From the IMG/VR virus record IMGVR_UViG_3300032516_000001, positions 1 through 64,000 of that record: a stretch of 64,000 nt of DNA, one strand, 5' to 3'. A program made the position numbers and the translations under genes. Below the pieces are notes generated by a model, which was given only the letters and a program-made list of their open reading frames with translations, searched no databases and was not told the origin of the DNA. Positions within the stretch are counted from its first letter, which is position 1. Each line of letters starts with the position of its first letter. This document shows positions 21,117-56,528 of this stretch, piece by piece.

Positions 21117-22100
21117 ATGGTCGTTGTATTAGATGATATGGAGCACAGCGAACTCAATGTCGTCAGCGAGCAATCGGATCGTGCTTTGCGACCTGTTACA
21201 TTTGACGATTTCATCGGCCAACCGAATACGGTAGCTAATCTTCGAGTATTTGTCAGTGGTGCCAAAGAGCGTGGCGAACCATTAGACCACTTGCTCTTAG
21301 CTTGCGCTCCGGGACTCGGCAAAACTACCTTGGCCAATATCCTGGCTAACGAGATGGGTGCTCGACTGGTTGTAGTGAACACGCCTTCAATCAAGACTAA
21401 GGGCGAGCTGGCGAGCCTACTCGTCAGTCTCAAGAAGGGTGACATCCTCTTCCTAGATGAGATTCACAGTCTGCACCCGAAGATCGAAGAGGTGCTTTAT
21501 CCGGCTATGGAGGACTACCGGCTTGTAATCATGGCCGGGAATAACGCATTAAACATTCATCTCGAGCCCTTCACGCTCATCGGTGCAACCACTCGAGAGG
21601 GGATGCTCCAGCGACCGCTGCGTGATAGATTTGGCGAAATCATCCGGATGCAGCTTTACAGCGAAGACGAGCTGACTATCATTGTGAAGAATAGTGCAGC
21701 CAAGTTACACCTAGTGTGTAGTGATGATGCTGCTATGGAACTGGCACGCCGGGCTCGTGGTACCCCCCGAATTGCTAATCGGCTGCTGCGAAGGGTCCGT
21801 GACTTCGCCCAGTATCAGGGCACCAATGTGATCACGGCAGATATCGTAAACACGACCTGTGATCACTTGGGTGTAGATTCCCTGGGGTTGGATGAAACCT
21901 CCCAGCGATACCTGAAAATCCTGCTCGAAAAGGGCGCGGCAGTTGGATTTAATGTGATGGTGTCATTGCTCGGTGAATCCAAGGATACTGTCGAGGATGT
22001 GATTGAGCCTCATCTGATGAGGCTTGATCTCATCGAGCGCACCAGCAAGGGCCGCGTTGCAACGGTCAAGGCCCGTCGTCACCTCTATCCGGAGCACTAG
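21117..22100 (+). CDS. ruvB: Holliday junction branch migration ATPase RuvB
   Basis: LRP.TFDDFIGQ, PGLGKTTLA, LFLDEIH, GATTR, RDRFG, RGTPRIANRLLRRVRDFA. Confidence 0.97.
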   Translation: MVVVLDDMEHSELNVVSEQSDRALRPVTFDDFIGQPNTVANLRVFVSGAKERGEPLDHLLLACAPGLGKTTLANILANEMGARLVVVNTPSIKTKGELASLLVSLKKGDILFLDEIHSLHPKIEEVLYPAMEDYRLVIMAGNNALNIHLEPFTLIGATTREGMLQRPLRDRFGEIIRMQLYSEDELTIIVKNSAAKLHLVCSDDAAMELARRARGTPRIANRLLRRVRDFAQYQGTNVITADIVNTTCDHLGVDSLGLDETSQRYLKILLEKGAAVGFNVMVSLLGESKDTVEDVIEPHLMRLDLIERTSKGRVATVKARRHLYPEH

Positions 22101-22503: not shown

Positions 22504-22884
22504 ATGTCCGAAATAACCCGCGAACAAGCTATCGAGTATCTTTCCGGTCTTCCGCCCGTGCAAACGGCCGAACTCAGAGAAGAATTGGAAAATAAATGGG
22601 GCGTCAAAGCTGCCCCGTCTACCACTACCATCGTCAATCCAGAAGTACCTGTGATTGTCGAGGTCGAGGAAAAATCTGAATTCAATGTGATTCTTAAGGA
22701 CATTGGCGCAAATAAGATTCAAGTGATTAAGGTGGTGCGTGAAATCACTGGGCTCGGTCTCAAAGAGTCCAAAGAATTAGTTGAATCTGTCCCAAAGCCG
22801 ATTAAGGAAGCTATCTCTAAAGAGGAAGCGGAAGATATCAAGAAGAGACTAGAAGGAGCCGGGGCAACTGTCGATCTTGAGTAA
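22504..22884 (+). CDS. rplL: Ribosomal protein bL12 (L7/L12)
   Basis: [52 protein letters not shown]. Confidence 0.97.
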
Positions 22885-22919: not shown

Positions 22920-24332
22920 ATGAGCACTTCCTATAAATACGTCACTCAGCGCCTAGGCGATAATCACTATATCTTGTCGGCGCGAGATGACATGAAAGTT
23001 GATGTTCACGCATATTTGTCTGATGAACTCTTTGCGAAGTCAGAAGACGAAATGTGGAATCAGGCGGCCAATGGCGCTTCCTATGAAGGCGTCACTGGTG
23101 CTTATCTGATGCCCGATTGTCATTCTGGCTTCGGCGTTCCCATAGGTTCTGTCATTGTAACTGAAAATACGCTAATTCAAGCCAGCGTCGGTTTCGATAT
23201 CAGCTGCGGCATCTTGCACATGCGCGTTACTGGATTGTCGGCTTCTGGAGTAAGAGGTCGATATAATCGAGAGCGCTGGATTCATGAAGTTGAGAAGCGC
23301 GTGGCTCTTGGCGTCGGTTCGCACCGCCCTGAACTCATGCCAGAGTTCACAAAGGACAAGCTCGAAGAGATTTTGCGTTTCGGTGGTAAGCCGATCGGAG
23401 TCGATCCGAATGTTTGTGAACGGTTATTTATTCCGGTGTCAGAAGATGCAAATCTGAAGAGAATTCCGGAGGCTTACGACAGGGCTCTACCTCAGCTTGG
23501 GAGCCTCGGTGGCGGCAACCACTTCTGTGAATTGCAAGTCGATAAGGATGATGGCTCTGTATGGGTCATGATTCATTGCGGTAGCCGTGGTTATGGATAC
23601 CAAACTGCGGAACATTACTTCTACGAAGGAGCGAATGCACGCGGAATTGTTAGTAATCGTCGGGGTCTGTCATGGCTTCGTGAAGATGAGGATCTCGGGA
23701 AGGAGTACTGGGATCATCACAATAGCGCTGCTAATTACGCCATAGCCAATCGACACATCATAGCCAATAGTGTACGCGAAGCTTTGCAAGAGGTATTCAA
23801 TGCTGACGGTGAAGTTTACTACGAAATCAGTCACAATCTCGTTCAAAAAGAGACCTTGGTTATGCCTGATGGTACGACTAAGGCCGGGTACGTTCACCGT
23901 AAAGGCGCAACCCGCGCCATGCCGGCAAATCACCCGGATTTAGTTGGATCAGCGTGGAGTAAAATTGGAAATCCATGTCTTATTCCGGGGTCCATGTTCG
24001 AGGGAGCAGCAATTTTGATGCCTAACGCTGGGGCTCACCAGACCGCTTGCTCTGTAAATCATGGATCAGGGCGAGTTATGGCTCGTGGAGCGGCCAAGCG
24101 TAAGCTCGAGCACAAGCAAGAACGAATTGACAAGGAAATGCACGATATTTCCCGTCAATTCAATGGCGTCACGATTGAGGGCATCGTAACGAATGCTAAG
24201 CACATTCCTCTCGATGAATGCAATGCAGTATACAAAGATCTTGATACGGTTGTTAAGGTGCTGCAAGATTCCGATATTGCAACTAGGAATCGTAGGTTGT
24301 ACCCTGTGGCTGTAATCAAGGGAACTGATTAA
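22920..24332 (+). CDS. rtcB: RNA ligase RtcB
   Basis: MPDCH.G.G.PIG, VGFDISCG, LGSLGGGNHF.E, HCGSRG, HN, HRKGAT, PGSM, HGSGR, DE....YK. Confidence 0.95.
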   Translation: MSTSYKYVTQRLGDNHYILSARDDMKVDVHAYLSDELFAKSEDEMWNQAANGASYEGVTGAYLMPDCHSGFGVPIGSVIVTENTLIQASVGFDISCGILHMRVTGLSASGVRGRYNRERWIHEVEKRVALGVGSHRPELMPEFTKDKLEEILRFGGKPIGVDPNVCERLFIPVSEDANLKRIPEAYDRALPQLGSLGGGNHFCELQVDKDDGSVWVMIHCGSRGYGYQTAEHYFYEGANARGIVSNRRGLSWLREDEDLGKEYWDHHNSAANYAIANRHIIANSVREALQEVFNADGEVYYEISHNLVQKETLVMPDGTTKAGYVHRKGATRAMPANHPDLVGSAWSKIGNPCLIPGSMFEGAAILMPNAGAHQTACSVNHGSGRVMARGAAKRKLEHKQERIDKEMHDISRQFNGVTIEGIVTNAKHIPLDECNAVYKDLDTVVKVLQDSDIATRNRRLYPVAVIKGTD

Positions 24333-27726: not shown

Positions 27727-28599
27727 GTGGAACAAAAGCATTGGACGATCTATTGTCACATTCACATTGAATCAAGACGTCGCTACATCGGATTAACATC
27801 CCGTTCAGTGGAACGACGCTGGAGTCAGCATGTGACTCAAGCTAGGTTTTCCAAAAATGGACGATGGCATTTTCCAAATGCCATCCGGAAATACGGAAAA
27901 GATGCGTTTACTCATGAAATATTGGAGATTTGTTACACATTAGAAAAAGCTAATGCTGCTGAAGAGAAGTGGATTGAATTTTATGATACAAGGAATATCG
28001 AGAGAGGATTCAATTTAGCTAAAGGTGGTGAACATATACCGCATCCAATCCGGAAAAACCCCTGGGATGATCCGGAGTATCGAGCCAAAATGGTTGAAGT
28101 GATCAAGACAAGATGGCAGGATCCTGAATATCGTGCAGCTAACTTGGCCATTAGTAGAACTAGACTGGCAAAAGCGACTGAAATCGCGTCATTAAATAAA
28201 GTGCAAAGCAGATCAGAAGTGAGACAGCGATTATCTGAGATTATGAAGCATACAGCCAACACTCCCGAAGGCCGTGCTCAGCGTAAAGCATCGGCCCATC
28301 CTGGTAAAACCTTAAGTCCTGAACATCGCGCCAAAATATCGGCGAATAACGCTATGAAACGTCCAGAAGTTCAGGCAAAAGTGGGCGCCATGTGGCACGA
28401 TGCCGTGAAAAAAGAACGAATCAGGGCTAAAATATCGACTGGTGTCAAAGCTGCATGGAACGACCCTGTAAAAAGTAGACGGATGATGGATGGGATTGCA
28501 GTTGCATGGGCCAAATCACATCCACTAGAGTATGATCAGGATCAAAATCCCAAGTGTAATTTGTTCGAGTTCAAAGCAACGCAAACCGTAAAACCGTAA
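27727..28599 (+). mobile_element. Free-standing GIY-YIG endonuclease, copy 1
   Basis: WTIYCH..RRYIGLT..R..H..AIRKYG..E..GFN plus NUMOD3-like repeats. Confidence 0.9.
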
Positions 28600-29514: not shown

Positions 29515-30465
29515 GTGAATAAATACTGGACGATCTATTGTCATACGCACATTGAATCGGGACGTCGTTACATAGGTTTGACTGCACAGACGTGGCAGAA
29601 GCGCTGGAAAAACCACGTCTGTGCAGCTAATTCCGCTAGGGGTGGGCGTTGGCATTTTCCTAACGCCATTCGTAAATATGGAAAAGATGCATTTAGTCAT
29701 GAAATACTAGAAGTTTGTACAATATTGGAAAAAGCAAACGCAGCTGAAATCAAGTGGATTGAATTTTATAAGACTCGGGATCCTCAATTTGGATTTAACT
29801 TAGCAAAAGGTGGGGATCACATACCGTCCGAAATTCGGAAGAATCCTTGGAATGATCCTGAATTTCGAGCTAGAGCCTGTTTAGCGGCCAAAGCTAAGTG
29901 GCAGGATCCTAAATATCGTGCAGCTAACTTGGCCATTAGTAGAGCTAGGCTAGCAAAAGCGACTAAGATTGCGTCGTTGAATAAGGTACAAAGTAGACCG
30001 GAGGTAAAACAGCAATTATCCGAGATTATGAAACGTGTGGCTGCCACGCCAGAAGGCCACGCTCAACGAATCGCAGCGGCGCACCCTGGCAAAATTTTAA
30101 CTGCTGAACATCGCGCAAAAATATCAGCTAATGATGCTTCAAAAAGACCAGAAGTAGCAGCAAAGATATCTATCAGTAGTAAAGCGGCGTGGTCTGATTC
30201 TGAAAAACGCAAGCGTATGACGTTAGCATAGGTTGGTAAGAAACTAAGTCCTGAAACTATAGCCAAAATGATTGCTGCAAATACCGGACGTAAATTATCT
30301 GATGAAGCAAAACTTAAGATTTCCGAGGCGTTGACAGGGAGACCGAGACAAACGCATTGTCAAAGAGGGCATGCCATGGAAGGAAATAACATTCTCATTA
30401 CAGGTAATAGACACAGGTGTAGAATGTGCAGGAACATGAGACAAAGACATAGACGAATTAAATAA
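29515..30465 (+). mobile_element. Free-standing GIY-YIG endonuclease, copy 2, with in-frame TAG at 30229-30231
   Basis: Same N-terminal domain; after TAG the frame continues VGKKLSPETIAKMIAANTGRKLS..CQRGH..CRMC, like the C-terminus of copy 3. Confidence 0.85.
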
Positions 30466-31205: not shown

Positions 31206-32504
31206 ATGGCAAGTGAAACTGGGTATCATCCAAAACTCCAGAGATTCCGTTCTTCCATTGATGGTCGGAGTAATATACGAGACGTCTTCGTCACTCCTTC
31301 TTTGCATCAAGAGTGCATTAATACTGGTAGCACCGTATTAAATATGCTCATTGGCGGGTCGCGTTTGCCATCGGGCGAATTTGTTTGCCCTGGGTGGCCG
31401 CGAGGAAAAATTATTGAAATATTCGGCCGAGAAAGTTCTGGTAAATCCACTATCGCGCTTACGGCAATGGGTCAAGCTCTATTTAATGGCGGAGCAGAAG
31501 ATGGCTGTGGATTATATGTAGATCTAGAGTGCGCGGTTCAGGATTTTTACTCTATCAAATTAGGAACCGATTTCAGGTCACCTGAAACTGGTGGACATGG
31601 AAGAGCGGTGCGTGCTCAACCTCATACATTTGAAGAGACCGAAACCCTGGTGATGACAGCAGCATTGAATGGAGTCGATCTCGTAGTTATCGATTCTGTG
31701 GCTGGATTGATATCTGGGCGTGAGATTAAACGCGACTTATCAGATGCCGAGCAGAAGCAAGCTGTAGCGGAAGTCCCGAGGTTGATGTCGAATTGGATGC
31801 CCAAATTACAGAGTGTGATATCGCGAACTAAAAGCACGGTTATATTTCTGAATCAAACTCGAGATAAAATTGGGGCCAAGGGTTATACTGAGGAAACTCT
31901 CAAAAGCACAACTGGGGGTAATGCGCTAAAGTTTTGGGCTGCTATTCGCATAATATTGAAACCTAGATCTTCAACTAAGGCTAAGATTTTCAATCCGATA
32001 ACTCGTCAGCAGGAAGACGTTCAGATTGCAACTGAAATCGAGTGCAAGATCATCAAGAATAAGATTGATGCTAAGCAGGGTCACTCAGGGCTGATTACTG
32101 TTAGGTATGGAGTTGGAATCGACGAACTCCGTACTATGCTGAATGTGGGAGAAGCATACAAAGTCATTAAGAAGACCGGCAGTTGGTATGTATTCGAATC
32201 TCCAAATACAGGAGGGGTAATCAAAGCGGCTGGCATGGAAAAATTCAGACTAATGCTTCAAAAAGATGAAGCAATGCTAGCCGACTTCTTATCTATTTGC
32301 ACCGATCATGTTGTTCAGGGATATCGATTGATTGATGAAGATACTCTATCAAATTTAGCTGAACATGCTGTAACTAAACATGAAAAAGACGATGAAGATG
32401 AGGAGGATAGTAGTTCACCTGAAGAAAGAGATGCGACTCAAGAGGAAATAGAGGAGGCTGGTGTAGCGGTTTCAACCCCGAACATTGACGCGTCGGACGT
32501 GTGA
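31206..32504 (+). CDS. recA: RecA/UvsX-like recombinase
   Basis: GWPRGKIIEIFGRESSGKST, VIDSVA, FLNQ.R, TTGGNALKF, IKNK. Confidence 0.95.
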   Translation: MASETGYHPKLQRFRSSIDGRSNIRDVFVTPSLHQECINTGSTVLNMLIGGSRLPSGEFVCPGWPRGKIIEIFGRESSGKSTIALTAMGQALFNGGAEDGCGLYVDLECAVQDFYSIKLGTDFRSPETGGHGRAVRAQPHTFEETETLVMTAALNGVDLVVIDSVAGLISGREIKRDLSDAEQKQAVAEVPRLMSNWMPKLQSVISRTKSTVIFLNQTRDKIGAKGYTEETLKSTTGGNALKFWAAIRIILKPRSSTKAKIFNPITRQQEDVQIATEIECKIIKNKIDAKQGHSGLITVRYGVGIDELRTMLNVGEAYKVIKKTGSWYVFESPNTGGVIKAAGMEKFRLMLQKDEAMLADFLSICTDHVVQGYRLIDEDTLSNLAEHAVTKHEKDDEDEEDSSSPEERDATQEEIEEAGVAVSTPNIDASDV

Positions 32505-32568
32505 ACCATCAATTGGTTTCATAATCATAACTGGGGTAATTAATATAACTTTTATACACCATTTTAAT

Positions 32569-34338
32569 ATGGTATCATTCGGCGAAAAATTTTGGGGACT
32601 TCAACTAATTTCAAAAGTTGAAGTTACAAATGGGTCACATCAAAAACTAGTATGGGTTTGTAATTGTGGAAGGGAAACAAATATAGAAGTAAAAAGGGTA
32701 ACACATGGAGGTGCTAAATCGTGTGGAAGATGTAATGAAATATCAAAAGAGGAGATGACTGGACGTAAATTTGGGCATTTACAAATGAAGAATCCAGAAG
32801 CAATACTTCCTGGATCAGGGAAAAATATAACATGGATTTGTGATTGCGGTAGAGAAACAGAAACTAAAATATGTTTAGTAATTAACGGTAATACTAAATC
32901 GTGTGGAAGATGTAATGAAATATCAAAAGAGGAGATGACTGGACGTAAGTTCGGCAAACTTCAAATAAAAGTTCCTGAAACGATAAAACCAGGTTCCCAT
33001 ACAAGAACAACTTGGATCTGTGATTGTGGTAGAGAAACAATTGTTGAAATAAAACTGGTAACATCCGGAAATACTAAATCATGTGGTAGGTGTAACGAAG
33101 TATCAAAAGAGGAGATGTCTAAAAGGAAATTTGGACATCTCAGAATGAAAGATCCAGACACAGTTCTTCTTGGGTCAAATAAAAAGAAAATTTGGATTTG
33201 TGATTGTGGGCAAGAAATAAAAAGAGGAATTTTTAGTGTTACTTCTGGTAACACTAAATCATGTGGTTTTTGTTATTCCAAGGCCTTTTCATGGTGGGAT
33301 GAAAATAGAGAAATTATAAGATCCCTAAGGTGCCCAATCGATCCGGCCAATGTGCCAGATGGTTTTATTGTTCTCCAAACTATTAAGAATACGAAATCGA
33401 GATTTCTGTCTATATGCCCAGCATGTGGTGACAAACATTCATCAAAATGGGGGGATATAAGACAAGGTAGAGGTATTACGTGCGGATGTACTTATAATGG
33501 GTCTTCTCTAAATTCCGGAATAGTATCCTTTATTCGTTCCTTTGGGTTATCTGTAGTTACAGAATATAAGGTTGATGGGTTAAAGTATGATGTTTTTGTT
33601 CCGGATAAAAATTTATTGATAGAGATGAATGGTTTAAAATGGCACTCTGCTGATGGAGCAAAACAAAGAGATACTCAAAAATTTAAGAATGCGATCGAAT
33701 CTGGATATCAATTCATGATGATATTTGAAGATGAATGGAAAACAGGACGAATTAAAAATACGATAGTGAAATCCATTGGGGTAGATTGTTCAATTTCGAC
33801 TCGCCCCTCGAAATGTCTTTTAAAACAGATAAACACTATTGAAGCGAATCGATTTTACGATAAATTTCATTACATAGGTAAATGTAATCCGACTAATAAT
33901 TATGGGGCATTTTTCAATGATAAGTTAATTGCATGTATATCATTTGGAAGACCAACAAGACAAAATTCAAAATTTGAATATGAATTGCTTAGAATGGCAT
34001 CCGACCCAATTTGTAGAATACACGGAATCTGGACAAAGTTATTATCAGTATTCATAAAAGATAAATCTCCATTTTCCATAGTTTCTTTCTCGGATAATCG
34101 CCTATTTTCAGGTGATGTTTATACAAAAATGGGTTTTATTTTAAATGGTCTGGTAAAACCAGATTACTATTGGACTAACGGGTATAAAAGATTTCATAAA
34201 TCAACCATGAGGAAAAAAGAGAGCGAAAAGAACACCGGTATGACGGAAACAGAAATTAGAAAGTTACAAGGATACGATAAGATATGGGATTTAGGAAAAA
34301 AACGGTGGGCGTATGGCTCTTTCTCCGATCAAAATTAG
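32569..34338 (+). CDS. Multidomain endonuclease: CDCG repeats, PD-(D/E)XK (DUF559/Vsr-like) domain, GNAT/Mom-like C-terminal domain
   Basis: Four W.CDCG..TKSCG repeats; YDVFVPDKNLLIEMNGLKWH..EDEW; HYIG..ELLR..IVSFSD..G.VY..MGF. Confidence 0.75.
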   Translation: MVSFGEKFWGLQLISKVEVTNGSHQKLVWVCNCGRETNIEVKRVTHGGAKSCGRCNEISKEEMTGRKFGHLQMKNPEAILPGSGKNITWICDCGRETETKICLVINGNTKSCGRCNEISKEEMTGRKFGKLQIKVPETIKPGSHTRTTWICDCGRETIVEIKLVTSGNTKSCGRCNEVSKEEMSKRKFGHLRMKDPDTVLLGSNKKKIWICDCGQEIKRGIFSVTSGNTKSCGFCYSKAFSWWDENREIIRSLRCPIDPANVPDGFIVLQTIKNTKSRFLSICPACGDKHSSKWGDIRQGRGITCGCTYNGSSLNSGIVSFIRSFGLSVVTEYKVDGLKYDVFVPDKNLLIEMNGLKWHSADGAKQRDTQKFKNAIESGYQFMMIFEDEWKTGRIKNTIVKSIGVDCSISTRPSKCLLKQINTIEANRFYDKFHYIGKCNPTNNYGAFFNDKLIACISFGRPTRQNSKFEYELLRMASDPICRIHGIWTKLLSVFIKDKSPFSIVSFSDNRLFSGDVYTKMGFILNGLVKPDYYWTNGYKRFHKSTMRKKESEKNTGMTETEIRKLQGYDKIWDLGKKRWAYGSFSDQN

Positions 34339-35491
34339 GATTTCCAGTTTCCAATCAATTGACGAAGTGGAGTTTGATATCTATGGTTTTACTTGTATTA
34401 CTGGAATTACAAACATAGGCAAATCGAGTATCATCAGAGCCATATCTGGAGCACTAACGAATGTTCCTGTAGGTGCCCTAGTTAGAAAAGGAGCAAAATA
34501 CTGTTCAGTAACGATAGATACTAAGGATTGGGGTATCACATGGGAAAAGGGAGAACGTGGCGTAAATAGATACCACATCAGAGGGAAGGATGCTCCTCTT
34601 GACAAAGTCGGCGGCGGTCAGATTGAAGAAATATCAAATTACGGATTTAACTCCATAAAGGTTGGATCGGACCAAGTATACCCGTGGCTAGCGTCCCAAT
34701 TCAAACCACTGTTCTTATTAGACCAATCCGGTCCAGCAATTACTGATTTTATTTCTGAAGTATCCCATCTACAAGTTCTCCAAAATGCGATATCAATCAA
34801 CATCAAGAGTCGCAAAAAATCATTGGATGAGGCCAAAGTCAGGACTGAAAATGTTCAAAAATTGCAAATAAAAGAACAATCACTGGCTAAATGTGATGTC
34901 ATAATCCAGATCCGGAATGAATTAGAAGAACAGGCAGCATCTATCAAAAAATATGAAGAAAGGATATCAACTGGTGAACAAATCGATGATGCATTACATC
35001 AAACGAATACTAGATTGAACCGGATTGAAGGCATCGAAAGACTTGAAATTCCAAACTCCGTATCCACAGAAGAATATTCAACCATCATCAACATGTATAA
35101 TCATTGGCTCGCCCTTGAACAAGCGGCTCGCCGAGTTATTACGCTACGTGAAGTATCATCGGTGTCCATACCATCAGACACCTCAAGCGAGGAAATCGAA
35201 TCGTTGATTGCTATTGAAATACTGGCAATTCGTATTCATGAACTCAATAGGTTGGTTTCGATATTATCCAAGCACATATCAATCCCCAGGTTCAGGGAGA
35301 CCTTTCCTGAGGTTTTGAAGATGGAAAGCATACTCACCCGTCTGAATACTATCAAGGCCGAGGAAAAGGCCTTCTCGAGCCAGCTCGGGGTTATTTCTGA
35401 TGAGTTGTCTGAAGTGGAAGACGAAATATCGCAAATTCCGCTCTGCCCGTCCTGTTCAAGACCGGCAGTTCCATCCCACACTCACGCATAA
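34313..35491 (+). CDS. SbcC/Rad50-like ATPase, N-terminal half only
   Basis: FQS..ITGITNIGKSSIIRAI Walker A, Q-loop-like SQF..FLL, coiled coil, ends at Zn hook CPSC. Confidence 0.8.
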   Translation: MALSPIKIRISSFQSIDEVEFDIYGFTCITGITNIGKSSIIRAISGALTNVPVGALVRKGAKYCSVTIDTKDWGITWEKGERGVNRYHIRGKDAPLDKVGGGQIEEISNYGFNSIKVGSDQVYPWLASQFKPLFLLDQSGPAITDFISEVSHLQVLQNAISINIKSRKKSLDEAKVRTENVQKLQIKEQSLAKCDVIIQIRNELEEQAASIKKYEERISTGEQIDDALHQTNTRLNRIEGIERLEIPNSVSTEEYSTIINMYNHWLALEQAARRVITLREVSSVSIPSDTSSEEIESLIAIEILAIRIHELNRLVSILSKHISIPRFRETFPEVLKMESILTRLNTIKAEEKAFSSQLGVISDELSEVEDEISQIPLCPSCSRPAVPSHTHA

Positions 35492-36621: not shown

Positions 36622-36936
36622 ATGCAACCGATTGATTGGAATTTGGTACCTGACGATGGGACGATGATTCTATTGACTATTCCTGACTTATTAGATGATA
36701 TTTCATTACAAATGGCAGATTTCAAAGATGACTATGCACTGGTTTTTAAGAAGACAGGCAGCTATTTGGGACTAACTTTATCTCGGGGGGTCAGACTGGG
36801 CAAAGGGCCGGCTAGAATGATTAATGGAATCTGGTATATAGACGAAGATCCGTATTTGCAGAAAGTATATACCGACATAGACCTCGATCCAGAACTCGTT
36901 GATCTAAAGCTAATTAAATTAAATGAAATGAAATGA
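36622..36936 (+). CDS. Hypothetical protein
   Basis: ORF only. Confidence 0.55.
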   Translation: MQPIDWNLVPDDGTMILLTIPDLLDDISLQMADFKDDYALVFKKTGSYLGLTLSRGVRLGKGPARMINGIWYIDEDPYLQKVYTDIDLDPELVDLKLIKLNEMK

Positions 36937-37031
36937 AGTTATGATGTCTTAATATATCAAGAGTTTAATTAAAAAGCGTGATGTTAAACTACACGAGGTG
37001 AACTCTGTCATGAATGACATCGGAGGGTGAA

Positions 37032-37415
37032 ATGGCTGATATTGATGGACTCCACTTATTAGTTGATGGACAAGTTGAAGATACTTCAGTCTTTGCCCAA
37101 GACAATATAGACCAGTTACTAAGACGTTTAGTCATCGACTTAGATATGGAGTTACTTCTTGAACCTCAGTTTAAAGAAGTGGCATTGAATCCGGCAGAAC
37201 TTGAGAAGGATGGGTTCTCCGATGATGGTGGCCTTTCAGCATTTTGCATGATTTCAACTAGCCACATATCAATTCATGTATGGCCATTACGAGCTGTATT
37301 TATGGCCGATATTTTTAGCTGCAAGAAGTTCGATGCTCCAAAGGCTCAAAGAACCGTCATAGAGTTCCTGCACCCAACTAGCCTAAAAATTCAGTCTATA
37401 TCTCGTTCCCCGTAA
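37032..37415 (+). CDS. speD: SpeD/AdoMetDC-like pyruvoyl-dependent decarboxylase
   Basis: GLHLLVD..GGLS..ISTSHISIHVWP..DIFSCK.FD. Confidence 0.85.
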   Translation: MADIDGLHLLVDGQVEDTSVFAQDNIDQLLRRLVIDLDMELLLEPQFKEVALNPAELEKDGFSDDGGLSAFCMISTSHISIHVWPLRAVFMADIFSCKKFDAPKAQRTVIEFLHPTSLKIQSISRSP

Positions 37416-37444: not shown

Positions 37445-38155
37445 ATGAGAACCCCGGAACCAACGGAATCGATCCTACAACCGAGTCACCCGTCGTACGG
37501 ATGTACTCAGGCTTGGTTCGTATTCGGTGTCTTGAACCCGGCAGGGGATATCACCAGGGTCTTGATCGTCGAAGCCAAGAACATCTGGGCTGTTCAAACG
37601 CTGGAGCGAGTGTCCAACAAGGATAACAGGGTCAATGACCACTGCGAACTCATGACCGTCGGTAGGCAGTGCGCCAGCCTTGGCACTCGCTCAGATAGAG
37701 CAGTCGAAGTGTCATATGTCGACTTCCTCATCGATATCGTCGAACCTCACCGGCTTGTCGAAGATCATTACATCGCAACGACATTCGATCGGTCCCTGAC
37801 TGATGCCGATCGAGCATATGCAGCTAAAAAACTGGAAGCATTGGAGAAGCAATCCCGGGTACCGGAGCAGGTACCGGAGCAATCTATCCCTGACCTGACC
37901 GAGGCTGAGTTGGAAGCGCTCTACGATGAAGATGCCAAGCAGCAGGCCGAGCAGTCAGCCGCACCGGTAATGAATAAGTTCCTCAGTGATCATTATTCGA
38001 TTCAGACGTCGTCTACTCATCATAGAGTGACTGCGGCTCTGCTCGACTTGGGCTTCAAGAAGCAGCAAATCGGCCAAGTCATGGGTGAAATTGATGCTAG
38101 CGGAACAGTAGAGAATACAGTCAAATTGGCACTACAGCAACTCAACGTGAGGTAG
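37445..38155 (+). CDS. Hypothetical protein with C-terminal RuvA domain III-like module
   Basis: Ends VTAALLDLGFKKQQI...TVENTVKLALQQL. Confidence 0.7.
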   Translation: MRTPEPTESILQPSHPSYGCTQAWFVFGVLNPAGDITRVLIVEAKNIWAVQTLERVSNKDNRVNDHCELMTVGRQCASLGTRSDRAVEVSYVDFLIDIVEPHRLVEDHYIATTFDRSLTDADRAYAAKKLEALEKQSRVPEQVPEQSIPDLTEAELEALYDEDAKQQAEQSAAPVMNKFLSDHYSIQTSSTHHRVTAALLDLGFKKQQIGQVMGEIDASGTVENTVKLALQQLNVR

Positions 38156-38503: not shown

Positions 38504-38992
38504 ATGACGACCGTAATCATAGGATATGGCCCTCTTTCGGAGGTACACCCGTATATTCCAGAATTTATAATTCTGCAAACCGACGATAATATCATTAAAC
38601 TTGGACAAGATCAACAGAGAGTCAATTTAACTCCGAAGACCCTGGATGACTTGATAGCAAGCAAACAAGTGAAGTTATTTGACGGAAGTGCAGAATATTA
38701 CTCAGATCAATGGATAGCTATTGAATGCGATGCACCAATTATACTGGCTAGATTCCCACTAGCTGAGAATCAAAAATGGGCAGTCGGGCGGGCTTCTAAG
38801 TTAATTGAAGAATCTTTTGCATTTAGCCACAAGGAGCCACTAAAAGCCATATCAGTCCTACAGATTGCCGCTGGACTGTGTAAGATAGAATTGTCTAAAT
38901 TAGTTCAAGCTTTAGAAGCTAAACGTAAGGATCCCTCGGAAAAATTAGAAACCATCTTGCTAAGAATCAAATCAGAACTATCGAAGAACTAG
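38504..38992 (+). CDS. Hypothetical protein
   Basis: ORF only. Confidence 0.6.
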   Translation: MTTVIIGYGPLSEVHPYIPEFIILQTDDNIIKLGQDQQRVNLTPKTLDDLIASKQVKLFDGSAEYYSDQWIAIECDAPIILARFPLAENQKWAVGRASKLIEESFAFSHKEPLKAISVLQIAAGLCKIELSKLVQALEAKRKDPSEKLETILLRIKSELSKN

Positions 38993-39049
38993 AGGGTGAA
39001 ATGAAGGTTCACGAACTCGTATCTCAATTGTCAAAATTTGATTCTTCGG

Positions 39050-40256
39050 TGAAGCGGTGAGTACCATATGTGTGTGCGCAGCAGGGCACGCTTTCGACGG
39101 CGAGAAAGGTGGTTGCCCGATGTGTGTTGATAGCAAGACGGAGCCGCGGGAGGGATAGGCGATGGACGACAAGGGACGTATTCACCAGTTGACTGAGGAA
39201 GAACACGCCGCGCTGATAGCCAAAATCGAGGCCGGCTCCAAGCCGCGCATGGTTCCAGTGCCGAGCGAATCGGTGGGCAAGATCATGGCGCAGAGTCGGC
39301 ACGAACTCCAGGCACTACACGGACCCGTGACATGCCCGGAGTGCGCTCGAATCGGTTTCGACTCCTGTATGCCGATGGGTCGTGGGTGTCTATGCCCAGA
39401 GTGCGAAGAGGAGCAGCCATGAGCGAGCAGAACGGAAGGACGAGTGCAGACCCACGAGAGGTAGCCGCCCTGCGCGCCGAGGTCGAGCGGCTGCGCATGA
39501 AGGCCGGGCGACTACAGGCCCGCGTCTCCGTGTTCATGCAGGCGATGGGCTGGCTCGCCCGCAACGGGCACCAGGTACGAGCCCAGCGCTGGATTGCGCG
39601 CGCCGACGAGTCTGCGGCTGACGTGCGGCCCGAGGACTTCGTTGTGGCGAAGCCATGTGCCCTCGCCACGCCCAAGGCGCCGGCCGAACTCGTCCGCCAG
39701 TCGCCGCCCGCTGCGGTGCGCGATGAGAAAGGCGGTGCGCGATGACGCCGCCGAGCAACGAAGTCTGGCTATTCCCGACACGACCCGGTGAGCAAGAGGA
39801 CAGGATGGGGCGCAAGGGGTGGACAGCCCTTTGGGTGTCGTATGGAAAGCCGCGCGCACAGTGCAGTTTCACGCAACTGGCCAAACTGCAATCGCAGACC
39901 GGGTGGTCCGGTAAGAAGGTGATCGTGCTCGACAAGGACCCAACATGAAGACGACGGCGAAGACGCAGCGCATCGATGCCGCAATCAGAAGGCTATGCAG
40001 ACGTGACGCGCGGCTCACCAAGCTGGAGCCAGAGTTGGAGCGCGCCTTCCTCGTACGCGAGGAGCTGGCCAGCCTACACAAGGCCGCCGCTTTGGTGCTG
40101 CTGAGGTATCGAAAGGAACGAAACCTAGCTACGGCCATGGCTGCGCTGGACGAAGCGGACGAGGCAGCAGGCGCCACGCTCGCCCGCCAGTCGCCGCCCG
40201 CTGTGCCGACCACGAAAGGAGCCGCAAAGTGAAAGTCTACGTAGCGAGCAGTTGGA
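39050..40256 (+). mobile_element. High-GC foreign insertion carrying five small phage-like genes
   Basis: Abrupt switch to GC-rich sequence; overlapping ORFs 39057..39158, 39162..39422, 39419..39745, 39742..39948, 39945..40232; truncated ORFs at both edges. Confidence 0.8.
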
Positions 40257-40473
40257 GTACTATATTGAACATATACAGTATAAAGGCAATGAACGCTACT
40301 ATTCGATGATAACGCTTCTTGGTGTCTCCGGCCTCTAGTAACACAGCCGCTACACATATCAACTGTGCAATCCAATAAATAACCGACTCGTATTTGAAGT
40401 TATTCTTAATATGGGTAATGGCGATTAACGTTGACATCCATACCAAAACGATCAAGTCCTTCATATTTATCAA
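40237..40473 (-). CDS. Small membrane protein
   Basis: Hydrophobic segments. Confidence 0.5.
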   Translation of the reverse strand: MINMKDLIVLVWMSTLIAITHIKNNFKYESVIYWIAQLICVAAVLLEAGDTKKRYHRIVAFIAFILYMFNIVLQLLAT

Positions 40474-43640: not shown

Positions 43641-44093
43641 TTAATTACCTTGAAAATTTAAAGCTTTGTATATATCTTCTGCCTTAGCTTGATCTGGATC
43701 AACAGTAACAACTTCATCTCCTGGATAAGCAAAAATTGCATAGTTATCCCACCATATTTTTCCAATATCTTTGTTTGGATCTATAGGGATGACTTTTGAT
43801 GTGTCTTCGATCTCCCATCCATCATCCATAGCGGCATCGAAGTCAAAGTCGTCCGGTACTTCAACGACAAGAGAGAAATCTTCGTCCGTGTCGTATCCTA
43901 AAACATATGGCGCAAGTTTGTCGTACATATTATATACTTGATCTAACATATCTTGAACAAACCCGGGGTCTGACCAGTTATCGTGTGGATGATAAGTATC
44001 GGTAAAGAAACCAAAGAATTTATGCCCAGGACTGGGTTTAATTTTCCTGGGATGATTCAGCAATAAAGCTATCTTCAATAAATTTGGTTTCAT
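43641..44093 (-). CDS. Hypothetical acidic protein
   Basis: Probable start MKPNLLKIA at 44093, overlapped by the end of GIY-YIG copy 3. Confidence 0.6.
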   Translation of the reverse strand: MKPNLLKIALLLNHPRKIKPSPGHKFFGFFTDTYHPHDNWSDPGFVQDMLDQVYNMYDKLAPYVLGYDTDEDFSLVVEVPDDFDFDAAMDDGWEIEDTSKVIPIDPNKDIGKIWWDNYAIFAYPGDEVVTVDPDQAKAEDIYKALNFQGN

Positions 44094-45102
44094 ATTTACC
44101 AACATTCTTTTGTTGCGTACGATATTGTTTTCTACGCAAACTGTGACAAGTTCTACAAATTCTTGTGCCATTAACAGTATACGCATTTTCTAATAGATGT
44201 CCCCTTTTGCAATATACCTGCTTCGGCCTGTTTTTGAGCGCCATTGCAACTTTGGCTATATGTTCTGGACTGTGTCTTTTACCTCTATGCGCATCGCCTA
44301 TTTTAGCCCGATGTTCTGGACTAAATTTTATGCCTTTTCTGGATGCTGCCGATTTAGCAATAGAATCCGCGTTTCTGGGTTTGCCTTTTTGAGATAGAGA
44401 TAATTTTTTTCTAGTTTCAGGGCTTGCCGATTTTCCTTTTCCTGCAACCGAAAGTTTAGCACAGTGATCCGGTTTCAAAGGAATGCCCTTAAGGACGGCG
44501 GAAGCGTGCTCACGAAATCCCGGTTTATCCCACTTGGCTTTTGCTGCTAAACAACACTTAGTCCTGTATTCAGAATTTTGCCATTCGGTCTTGGAAATAG
44601 CACTGCGTTTTTCCTTCGACTCCATGGTATTCATAGCTGCTCTTAAACACGCTCTAGCCTCGGGGGTTTGACCCGCATCAATAAATCTTTGTAAATTATT
44701 GGCTCGATATTCAGGATCTTGCCACTTAGCTTTGGCTGCTAAACATGCTTTTTCTCGATATTCAGGACGATTCCAAGGGTTTGTATTTTGGTGCGGTGTG
44801 TGCTCGCCACCTTTTGCTAAGTTAAATCCAAATTGTGGGTTTCTCGTGTTATGAAATTTAATCCATTTCTCTTCAGCTAAATTTGCTGATTCTAATGTAT
44901 CGCACACTTCTAAAATTTCATGAGAAAATGCGTCCCTACCATACTTACGGATGGCATTTGGGAAGTGCCAACGTCCGTTTTTTGAATACTTAGCCGCATA
45001 GACATGATCATTCCATCGTTGCATCATAGTCCGTTTAGTTAGACCGATGTAACGACGTCCAGATTCTGTATGAATATGACAATAGATCGTCCAATGATTC
45101 AC
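44038..45102 (-). mobile_element. Free-standing GIY-YIG endonuclease, copy 3
   Basis: WTIYCH..RRYIGLT; NUMOD3-like repeats; CKRGH..CRTC. Confidence 0.9.
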
Positions 45103-51084: not shown

Positions 51085-52161
51085 TTATCGTACACCCATA
51101 GCTTGCAGCATGTTTTGCCGAAATTCTGGATCCGCCCAGCGAGCCTTCATAGCTTCTGATATCTTCATCTTGGTTTCCGGATCATGTTTTTTCATTTTTG
51201 CCCAATAAGCTTTCGAAGCTTTCAGTATTTTGGCCCTAATTTCTGGGCTATGCGGTTTCGCTTTCATTTTATTGACGGTGGCGATTTTGTCTCGATAACT
51301 TGGGTCGGACATTCTCTTTTCCAAAGAATTCATAATCTTCTGCCGAAATTCTGGATTTGTCCAACGAATTTTCATGGCTTCCGATATCTTCATCTTAGTT
51401 TCCGGATCATGTGGTTTTGCTTTAATTTTATTAGAAGCCGCTATTCTCTCCCTGACATCAGGACTATTTAGTTTTTTCTTAATTAAATCTGAAGTTTTTT
51501 GTCGAAATTCAGGATCAGACCACGATTTCTTTAAGGCTTCCGATACCTTTGCAATATGCTCTGGAGAATGCATCTTCCCTTTCCTGGCTTTGGACATTCT
51601 TGCGCAAAATTCTGGGGTTCGTATTTTTCCTTTGTTTCCATTGGATATTTTTTCTTTGACCTCTGATCTAGCATTGACTTGTTTAGAGATCATGGACATC
51701 TTAGCTACAAATTGCGGATCGCTCCACATCTCTTGACTAGCCTTGGACCTTCGAGCCTGAACTAAGGGATCTTTGAGCGATGCATTGACCGAAGCTGTAA
51801 CTCTAGCTCTAAAATCTGGGTTATTCCACGGATTCTTCCTAATCGGATGCGGTTTATGTTCACCTCCCCTTGCCAAATTAAACCCAAATTGCGGATCTCT
51901 AGTTTTATAAAATTCAATCCATTTTTCTTCGGCTAAATTGGCCGCTTCTAATGTGTTACATACTTCCAAAACTCCATGTGAAAATGCATCTCTACCGTAT
52001 TTACGGATGGCGTTAGGAAAATGCCAGCGACCTCCTTTAGTTGATTTGGCAGCACATATATGGTTCCGCCATCTCTTCTCCATAGTCTGAGAAGTCATCC
52101 CAATATAACGGCGCCCAGAATCAATATGTGTATGATAATAGATCGTCCAGTGTTTATTCAC
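51085..52161 (-). mobile_element. Free-standing GIY-YIG endonuclease, copy 4
   Basis: WTIYYH..RRYIGMT; duplicated HDPETKMKISEAMK.RW..PEFRQ repeats. Confidence 0.9.
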
Positions 52162-55013: not shown

Positions 55014-56528
55014 TTGTACACTCAGCAAAATCCGAAAATTGTTGTTAAATGCACAGAATGTTTAAAAGAGTTACAAATATCAAAAATTGCCTTGGCTAGA
55101 GCATTAAAGAAAAGAGGTAAATATGTATGTTTACAATGCGTTATGTCATCAAATGAGGTTAGACATAAAATAAAGTTATTTAATAAAAATATGAGTAAAG
55201 AAACTAGAAATAAAATTCGTGAATCTTTAAAAAAGAAATATGCTGATGCTAGTGATGCTGAAATTGAAGTAATAAGACAAAAGTCACTTCAGATTTGGGA
55301 AGATTCGGAATTCACACGTAAACAGAAGTCAATGAGGGATAGCTCAGAATTTCGTTCTAAATTAAGTGAATCTGTTAAATTAGCATTCTCCAAATGCGAT
55401 TGGCCTGCGAGACAACCAGTCGTAGCTAAAAAGCTATGGCAAGATAAAGATTATAGGCGTAAACAGTTATTGTTTAAAGCATCTGATTCATATAGAGAGA
55501 AACAAAGTCGTATAACAAAAGCAAAATGGGGCACAGTCGAGTATAGAAAATCTCAGTCAAAAGGATTATCGGAAGCTTTTAAAAAAGGAGTTGATTCATA
55601 TATTGAGCGTGCTGTTCATAATATCTTGACTGATATGAATATGTCGTACATTCGGCATCATGTTATTGGCTGGTATGAATTTGATGTTTACATACCAGAC
55701 CATAAATTATTGATCGAATGCCAGGGAGAATATTGGCACTCGCTAGACAAACATAAAGCAAACGATATTAGAAAATATAATTATGTCAATGATTATTTCC
55801 CGGATCATAAAATTCTTTATCTATATGAGAGAGATTTTCTAAATCCACAAATCGTAAAACAAAAACTCATAAGTTCTTTAGTAGACAATTCTAATCGATT
55901 AATTGAATTGTCCCAGACATGTTTTCAACTTAATAATATTGTGACAAAAGTTCTGGCTACCAAACTAAAACAGAAGCATTCACATTATTCAGAACCAGAA
56001 GAATTCATGCAAGCATACCATTATGCTGGATACGGGAGAACTGCTAAGAAACTATACGGAGCATACTTGGATGAGAAGTTAATTGCGGTATGCAAATTTG
56101 CAGGCGTTATCAGGAAAGAGGTTGCAACTTCGATGAATTTTGAACCAAATCAAGTGTTAGAACTTGATCGTTTCTGCATCCACCCGCAGTACCATAAGAA
56201 AAATTTTGGTTCTTGGTTCATATCACGTTGTTCAAAATTATTATTAAATGAATGTACGAAAATCGACTGTCTGGTGTCTTTTGCTGATACTACATTTGGC
56301 CACCATGGAACAATATACTCAGCCGCTGGGTGGAAAATGATCCACACAGTTAAACCGGATTACCATTATGTAAGTGAGGATGGATTCGTATTACATAAGA
56401 AGACTTTATATAATCATGCCCGGAGAATGGGAAAGACAGAATCAAAATATGCAAATGAATTTAGATACACGAAAATATTCGGAAAAGAAAAGATAAAATT
56501 CGCATTATATCGAAGATGTATAGTCTAA
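55014..56528 (+). CDS. Endonuclease (DUF559/Vsr-like) fused to a Mom-like GNAT domain
   Basis: YEFDVYIPDHKLLIECQGEYWH; HYAG..ELDRFC..NFGSWFISR..LVSFADTTFGHHGTIYSAAGW. Confidence 0.8.
   Translation: MYTQQNPKIVVKCTECLKELQISKIALARALKKRGKYVCLQCVMSSNEVRHKIKLFNKNMSKETRNKIRESLKKKYADASDAEIEVIRQKSLQIWEDSEFTRKQKSMRDSSEFRSKLSESVKLAFSKCDWPARQPVVAKKLWQDKDYRRKQLLFKASDSYREKQSRITKAKWGTVEYRKSQSKGLSEAFKKGVDSYIERAVHNILTDMNMSYIRHHVIGWYEFDVYIPDHKLLIECQGEYWHSLDKHKANDIRKYNYVNDYFPDHKILYLYERDFLNPQIVKQKLISSLVDNSNRLIELSQTCFQLNNIVTKVLATKLKQKHSHYSEPEEFMQAYHYAGYGRTAKKLYGAYLDEKLIAVCKFAGVIRKEVATSMNFEPNQVLELDRFCIHPQYHKKNFGSWFISRCSKLLLNECTKIDCLVSFADTTFGHHGTIYSAAGWKMIHTVKPDYHYVSEDGFVLHKKTLYNHARRMGKTESKYANEFRYTKIFGKEKIKFALYRRCIV

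Follow-up and report, generated by a model that had tools for sequence, protein, structure and literature searches.

The RuvAB complex of bacteria is a branch-migration machine in which RuvA (e.g. from E. coli and T. thermophilus; PDB 1cuk, 1ixr, 7pbl) is the Holliday junction binding subunit. Canonical RuvA has three domains: domain I, an N-terminal OB fold (Pfam RuvA_N, PF01330); domain II, with two helix-hairpin-helix (HhH) motifs that bind junction DNA; and, on a flexible linker, domain III, a C-terminal three-helix domain that binds RuvB (Pfam RuvA_C, PF07499). RuvA forms a tetramer that binds Holliday junctions, and thus both recognizes the junction and regulates the motor through domain III. 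Domain III docks on a composite hydrophobic interface formed by helix alpha3 and the presensor-1 hairpin of RuvB, where it acts as a nucleotide-exchange factor (Wald et al., PMC9477746); this contact tethers the motor and drives nucleotide exchange and ATPase stimulation. Domain III alone is enough to bind RuvB in solved structures (PDB 1ixs and 7x7p), and cross-species RuvA-RuvB complementation is known (PMC9477746). A related logic is seen in the FtsK/SpoIIIE DNA translocases, in which an N-terminal anchor, normally a membrane anchor in FtsK, is joined by a linker to a hexameric alpha/beta motor, and in adaptors of other AAA+ machines, such as the UBX/UBA cofactors of p97 and ClpS for ClpA, in which a small conserved docking domain is attached to variable targeting parts.

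We analyzed a 64,000-nt stretch of DNA (hereafter, the window) that forms the first part of the 241,648-bp IMG/VR virus record IMGVR_UViG_3300032516_000001, which CheckV rates as 57% complete. A sequence-only reading had proposed that an ORF at positions 37445 to 38155 ends in RuvA domain III, joined by an acidic linker to an N-terminus without obvious RuvA motifs, in a window containing a complete ruvB some 15 kb away and a RuvC-like gene but no full ruvA. We found that this observation holds, except that the domain III had been described as grafted, which suggests a singular event, whereas the gene belongs to a conserved family.

The gene and its surroundings

The ORF at 37445..38155 on the + strand encodes 236 aa, starts at ATG and stops at TAG, and is tightly packed against the next gene, which starts 3 nt later. 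The same gene is called in independent JGI, ENA and Logan contigs, and it is single-copy in the 241-kb record. A complete RuvB gene (21117..22100, +; 327 aa) ends 15.3 kb upstream of the ORF, and contains RuvB_N (196 bits), AAA_lid_4 and RuvB_C. The encoded protein matches solved RuvBs at up to E 5.9e-93 and is about 50% identical to bacterial RuvBs. However, two features are atypical: residues 62-64 include Cys-Ala where the Walker A normally reads Gly-Pro (113 of 116 compared RuvBs have Gly and only 2 have the Cys), which could weaken its ATPase, and the tip of the presensor-1 hairpin (within residues 138-148) is 4 residues shorter than in bacterial RuvB, as in most RuvBs of this clade. Genes for a ribosomal protein L7/L12 homologue with both Pfam domains (22504-22884, +) and an RtcB RNA ligase (22920-24332, +) lie immediately downstream of RuvB, and RtcB is syntenic in a relative.

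The gene lies in a module of recombination genes. [quoted passage not shown] A RecA-like recombinase (31206..32504, +; Pfam RecA, E 2.5e-39) is syntenic in a Logan contig carrying a more distant family member (L006), in a contig of a close relative (L010) and in the P0060 contig, and an SbcC/Rad50-like ATPase (34313..35491, +; Pfam AAA_23, 30.6 bits; SbcC-like in PHROG) is syntenic in L006 and L010. Between these two genes is one of two genes (32485-34338 and 55014-56528, both +) whose products combine a restriction-endonuclease-like MTES_1575 region with a Mom-family domain; relatives have no such gene between RecA and the SbcC-like gene. Two flanking ORFs of unknown function, without Pfam or PHROG hits, are also conserved. 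The upstream 104-aa ORF (36622..36936, +) has blastp hits of 42-75% identity in L010, L006 and L112, a contig in which it lies next to a gene fusion described below, and is therefore a candidate functional partner of the N-terminal domain. The downstream 162-aa ORF (38504..38992, +) has 62% identity in L010 and 26% (E 6e-14) in L006. A homologue of pyruvoyl-type S-adenosylmethionine decarboxylase (37014-37415, +; Pfam AdoMet_dc, E 2.1e-16) lies directly upstream of the gene, and is present there in close relatives (L009, L010) but not in the more distant L006.

The window also encodes a family A DNA polymerase, a DnaB-like helicase and DnaJ. Four GIY-YIG homing-endonuclease-like genes, some with NUMOD3, are interspersed among the replication and recombination genes (27727-28599 and 29515-30231, +; 44038-45102 and 51085-52161, –), and next to two of them are 289-290-aa ORFs without family matches. 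A GC-rich island at about 39000-40400 (0.52 against about 0.40 in the flanks) holds four small, end-to-end coupled genes in the JGI calls and long overlapping ORFs on both strands; its origin is unexplained. A suppressor-type tRNA with anticodon TTA, which would read the TAA stop, was found at 15604-15679 (+) by ARAGORN and Rfam (64 bits). This prompted us to consider stop-codon recoding, which was rejected because all three stops are used, TAA is the commonest stop of long ORFs, and coding density under code 11 is 0.8-0.99.

The C-terminal domain is RuvA domain III

The tail (38009..38152, +; residues 189-236) was examined by sequence and structure. Pfam RuvA_C matched residues 195-233 (nt 38027-38143) at 31.4 bits against a gathering cut-off of 24 (E 2.7e-7). 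In a full-length AF2 model, the tail forms a compact bundle of three helices (191-201, 206-213 and 222-235), consistent with the UBA-like three-helix superfamily to which RuvA_C belongs, and its best structural matches were RuvA domain III chains (Z 6.4, rmsd 1.4 A over 46 residues, 24-28% identity). Unrelated three-helix domains followed at Z 5.3 and below and UBA domains at about 4-5, so the structural margin alone is modest. The sequence evidence is sharper: a profile of the C-terminal domains of 90 family members hit 12 distinct RuvA sequences in the PDB at E <= 1e-3 (best 1.4e-6), the only other hit at that level had no matched stretch, and UBA domains appeared only above E 0.1. The profile also aligned to residues 157-201 of a canonical RuvA. 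The sequence-only reading had named in advance a generic UBA-like helix bundle as the result that would overturn it; on the side of sequence and structure, this is not what was found, and the tail is specifically RuvA domain III. It is preceded by an acidic, variable and mostly disordered linker (37859..38008, +; residues 139-188), with pLDDT of 36-65 in the full-length model and with neither length nor sequence conserved across the family.

The N-terminal head domain has no recognizable fold or family

The head domain (37445..37858, +; residues 1-138) had no match in Pfam, PHROGs or a PDB sequence search. With an alignment of 88 sequences, AF2 folded it confidently (pLDDT 95.5, pTM 0.88) into an alpha/beta domain of five strands and five helices, ordered as two strands, a helix, three strands and four helices. 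No structure library gave a convincing match to this model: the best of 48,161 PDB chains in VIA-align was the ATfaRel2 antitoxin at Z 3.3, and the results were E > 0.4 in Foldseek PDB, TM < 0.4 in the ESM Atlas and E > 0.04 in BFVD, although this does not prove that the fold is new. Conserved positions in the family are H15, P16, S17, E54, R82 and F94. The domain is acidic (median pI 5.1 across the family, net charge –5) and has no recognizable DNA-binding motif, and what it binds is not indicated by these data.

We further analyzed the possibility that the head is a derived form of RuvA domains I and II. No RuvA_N hit was found in the protein, no RuvA chain matched the head model at Z >= 2, and hhalign against a canonical RuvA gave a probability of 0.06%. 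No HhH family was hit in Pfam at E <= 10, and the helices at 91-137 of the model gave no match to RuvA or to other HhH structures. These results reject a derived OB plus HhH unit. Two nuclease identities were also considered and rejected. A GIY-YIG/T5orf172 lead came from the Atlas's own low-confidence model (pLDDT 0.46, TM 0.33-0.36) and was not reproduced with the model at pLDDT 95.5; no Pfam hit supported it, and the GIY...YIG strands, catalytic Arg/Glu and fold of these nucleases were not recovered. A PD-(D/E)xK nuclease was suggested by a 'V-E-A-K' strand, but K45 and the upstream Asp are not conserved and no nuclease fold matched.

The head and tail define a family that co-occurs with a RuvB clade

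A profile of the head found 111 clusters at 50% identity among 1.84 billion representatives (E <= 1e-3), all from metagenomes and nearly all 170-240 aa long; the gene of the window scored E 4.4e-52. The C-termini of these proteins share an Ala-Leu..Leu-Gly-Phe/Tyr signature, and 64 of 94 full-length members hit RuvA_C at E <= 0.01. No relative was found in 50,697 deposited phage records, nor in one-per-species bacterial and archaeal genomes, although the latter scan used only two peptide patterns. There is no read, expression or habitat evidence.

To test whether the family is linked to RuvB, we retrieved 80 RuvB loci from IMG/VR and searched 37 records of at least about 30 kb; the records of loci L018, L061, L063 and L086 were not included in this search. 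The head family occurred in six (G001, G002, G003, G004, G005 and G025), which are exactly the records whose RuvB is 49-67% identical to that of the window. A search for ruvA beyond the window had been proposed beforehand as a check, and RuvA_N was found nowhere in the 241,648-bp record and in only one of the 37 records. Two of the six, G001 (427 kb) and G004 (393 kb), have terminal repeats and are rated complete; both have RuvB, the family gene and the RuvC-like gene, but no RuvA_N and no FtsK. Only these two complete genomes support the absence of RuvA, and a RuvA too divergent for Pfam RuvA_N cannot be excluded. The Logan contig L006, with a 37%-identical member, adds another pair and shows the same order of RuvB, RecA, SbcC-like ATPase and family gene. 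The family gene is 8-52 kb from ruvB, so that the two share a genome and often a module, but not an operon.

Other viral RuvBs were also compared. Six records (G012-G016 and G018; loci L106-L111) encode, directly upstream of their RuvB, a protein with a predicted N-terminal membrane helix, a basic low-complexity linker and a RuvA_C-like tail (17-25 bits, mostly below the Pfam cut-off), without RuvA_N, and their RuvBs share the short presensor-1 hairpin. A third, large group (IMG/VR loci L061, L063, L068, L081, L086 and L094) consists of RuvB-like genes 35-41% identical to that of the window, many in contigs of 90-185 kb, also with a short hairpin; those whose records were searched (L068, L081 and L094) had no head family, RuvA_N or RuvA_C match, and their partner, if any, is unknown. 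The short hairpin was not upheld as a strict marker of the head family, because G003 has the family and a long hairpin.

In a contig from JGI sample 3300032053, which also holds contigs carrying the gene of the window, a 533-aa protein (P0112; L112:1688-3289) has the head domain at residues 3-139 followed by FtsK_alpha and FtsK_SpoIIIE domains. Its gene sits at the syntenic position, after the ferritin gene and the conserved ~100-aa ORF. This fusion gives Rosetta-stone support to the idea that the head works with a hexameric duplex-DNA pump, and the head is used either with a RuvB recruited in trans or with an FtsK motor in cis. Another member (P0091, 317 aa) carries the head plus a hydrophobic C-terminal region.

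The tail is predicted to dock on the phage RuvB

A complex prediction with the phage RuvB was among the checks that had been named for the sequence-only reading. We folded RuvB (70-row alignment) with the tail (90-row alignment), and obtained an ipSAE of 0.63 (three runs, 0.62-0.66), whereas the best of three controls scored 0.00. The runs agreed in at least 98% of contacts and partner pLDDT was at least 81. The mark of the method was reached by 58 of 80 solved complexes and 2 of 110 mismatched pairs, although these counts hold only roughly because our own alignments were used. The predicted contacts are at RuvB residues 94-104 and 138-148, that is, helix alpha3 and the presensor-1 hairpin, which is the interface described for RuvA domain III (PMC9477746), and at tail residues 194-204 and 222-234, where the most conserved tail residues of the family (L199, L202, G203, F204 and L230) lie. 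Because RuvA-RuvB complexes are solved, the score might partly reflect the model's memory of them; it shows likeness, not binding, and neither binding nor ATPase stimulation was measured. The predicted site is the canonical one on the phage's own RuvB.

Interpretation

The most likely explanation, in which we have moderate confidence, is that the gene encodes a member of an uncharacterized family of huge-phage proteins that takes the place of RuvA as the docking and targeting subunit of the phage's own RuvB motor, and is thus probably a new kind of partner that tells the motor where to work. In this view, the head stands where RuvA has its junction-binding domains I and II and would supply the fixed point against which RuvB pumps duplex DNA. 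The most likely target would be the branched DNA made by the phage RecA during recombination-dependent replication and repair, which the phage RuvC-like nuclease would then cut. The present analysis shows the homology of the tail, the distinct modelled fold of the head, the co-occurrence with RuvB and the absence of RuvA, with the reservation on complete genomes given above; the contact between the tail and RuvB is a prediction only, and binding of junction DNA by the head is inferred from context alone. The acidic head, the distance from ruvB and the atypical Walker A of RuvB count against this explanation.

The interpretation offered in the sequence-only reading, an adaptor that redirects RuvB to another substrate or a decoy of host RuvAB, was supported only in part. 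Its adaptor half is supported, but redirection to another substrate is not shown, and since the gene sits in a RecA/RuvC-like/SbcC-like module, the ordinary substrate of recombination junctions is at least as likely.

A second, more doubtful explanation is that the protein is an anchor or adaptor that ties RuvB to something other than a DNA junction, such as a protein, a phage structure or the membrane, so that RuvB would work as a general, FtsK-like duplex-DNA pump rather than as a branch-migration motor. The FtsK fusion, in which the head takes the place of the membrane anchor, the hydrophobic region of P0091, the membrane-helix proteins upstream of RuvB in other viral lineages, and the acidic head without a known DNA-binding fold keep this possibility alive. 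However, the gene is embedded in a recombination context, a head-FtsK fusion would work equally well as a one-piece branch-migration motor, and no target protein has been identified.

A decoy or inhibitor, in which the tail occupies the RuvA site on host RuvB and blocks host RuvAB during infection, is unlikely. Binding to host RuvB is conceivable, given that domain III alone suffices for binding and that cross-species complementation is known, but among the records searched the family was found only with a phage RuvB clade, the large and strongly conserved head of about 135 aa would be needless for a decoy, and the fusion of the head to a motor is not explained; the decoy was not tested directly. 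The least likely reading, a generic UBA-like bundle in an unrelated phage protein, can draw on the commonness of such bundles, their alignment at Z 4-5.3 and the 30 of 94 members that miss RuvA_C at E 0.01, but is poorly supported against the Pfam score above the curated cut-off, the near-exclusive RuvA hits of the family profile, the first structural rank of RuvA domain III, the predicted complex at the canonical site with null controls and the strict co-occurrence with one RuvB clade.

Taken together, the head family, the membrane-helix proteins and the FtsK fusion raise the tentative possibility that RuvA domain III is a portable motor-recruiting handle in phages, with which unrelated heads (this alpha/beta domain or a membrane helix) harness a viral RuvB with a shortened presensor-1 hairpin, while the same head can instead be fused to an FtsK motor. 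The head would then be a previously unknown junction- or target-recognition domain, defining a RuvA-independent class of phage DNA-pump systems. In this natural family, recognition and motor docking are separated: the docking handle is kept and the recognition part is replaced by an unknown fold. If the head binds junctions, it is a new junction-recognition domain; if it binds something else, RuvB is being used as a general DNA pump, which would widen what this motor is thought to do. The clade has RuvB, a RuvC-like resolvase and a non-canonical partner, and the pair is small and soluble-looking, and so easy to test in vitro.

Comparison with known systems

Like bacterial RuvA, the protein has a C-terminal domain III on a flexible linker, predicted to dock on helix alpha3 and the presensor-1 hairpin, and is encoded together with RuvB and a RuvC-type resolvase. 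In contrast to RuvA, it lacks domains I and II, its head has a different, unmatched fold, its linker is longer (~50 aa) and acidic, and its gene is not in an operon with ruvB; its oligomeric state and DNA binding are unknown, and tetramer formation on junctions was not tested. With the FtsK/SpoIIIE translocases it shares the logic of a targeting or anchoring N-terminal part joined by a linker to a hexameric duplex-DNA pump, and P0112 is literally the head plus an FtsK alpha/beta motor. However, in the protein of the window the motor is recruited in trans through domain III and is an AAA+ RuvB rather than a RecA-fold FtsK, and no membrane segment is present. The uncharacterized membrane-helix proteins of G012-G016 and G018 likewise have a RuvA domain III-like tail without domains I and II and are paired with a viral RuvB with the short hairpin, but their N-terminal part is a predicted membrane helix rather than the globular head, and they lie immediately upstream of ruvB. 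The adaptors of p97 and ClpA, with which no test was made, share the attachment of a small conserved docking domain to variable targeting parts, but show no homology beyond the UBA-like fold class of the tail, and act with different motors and substrates.
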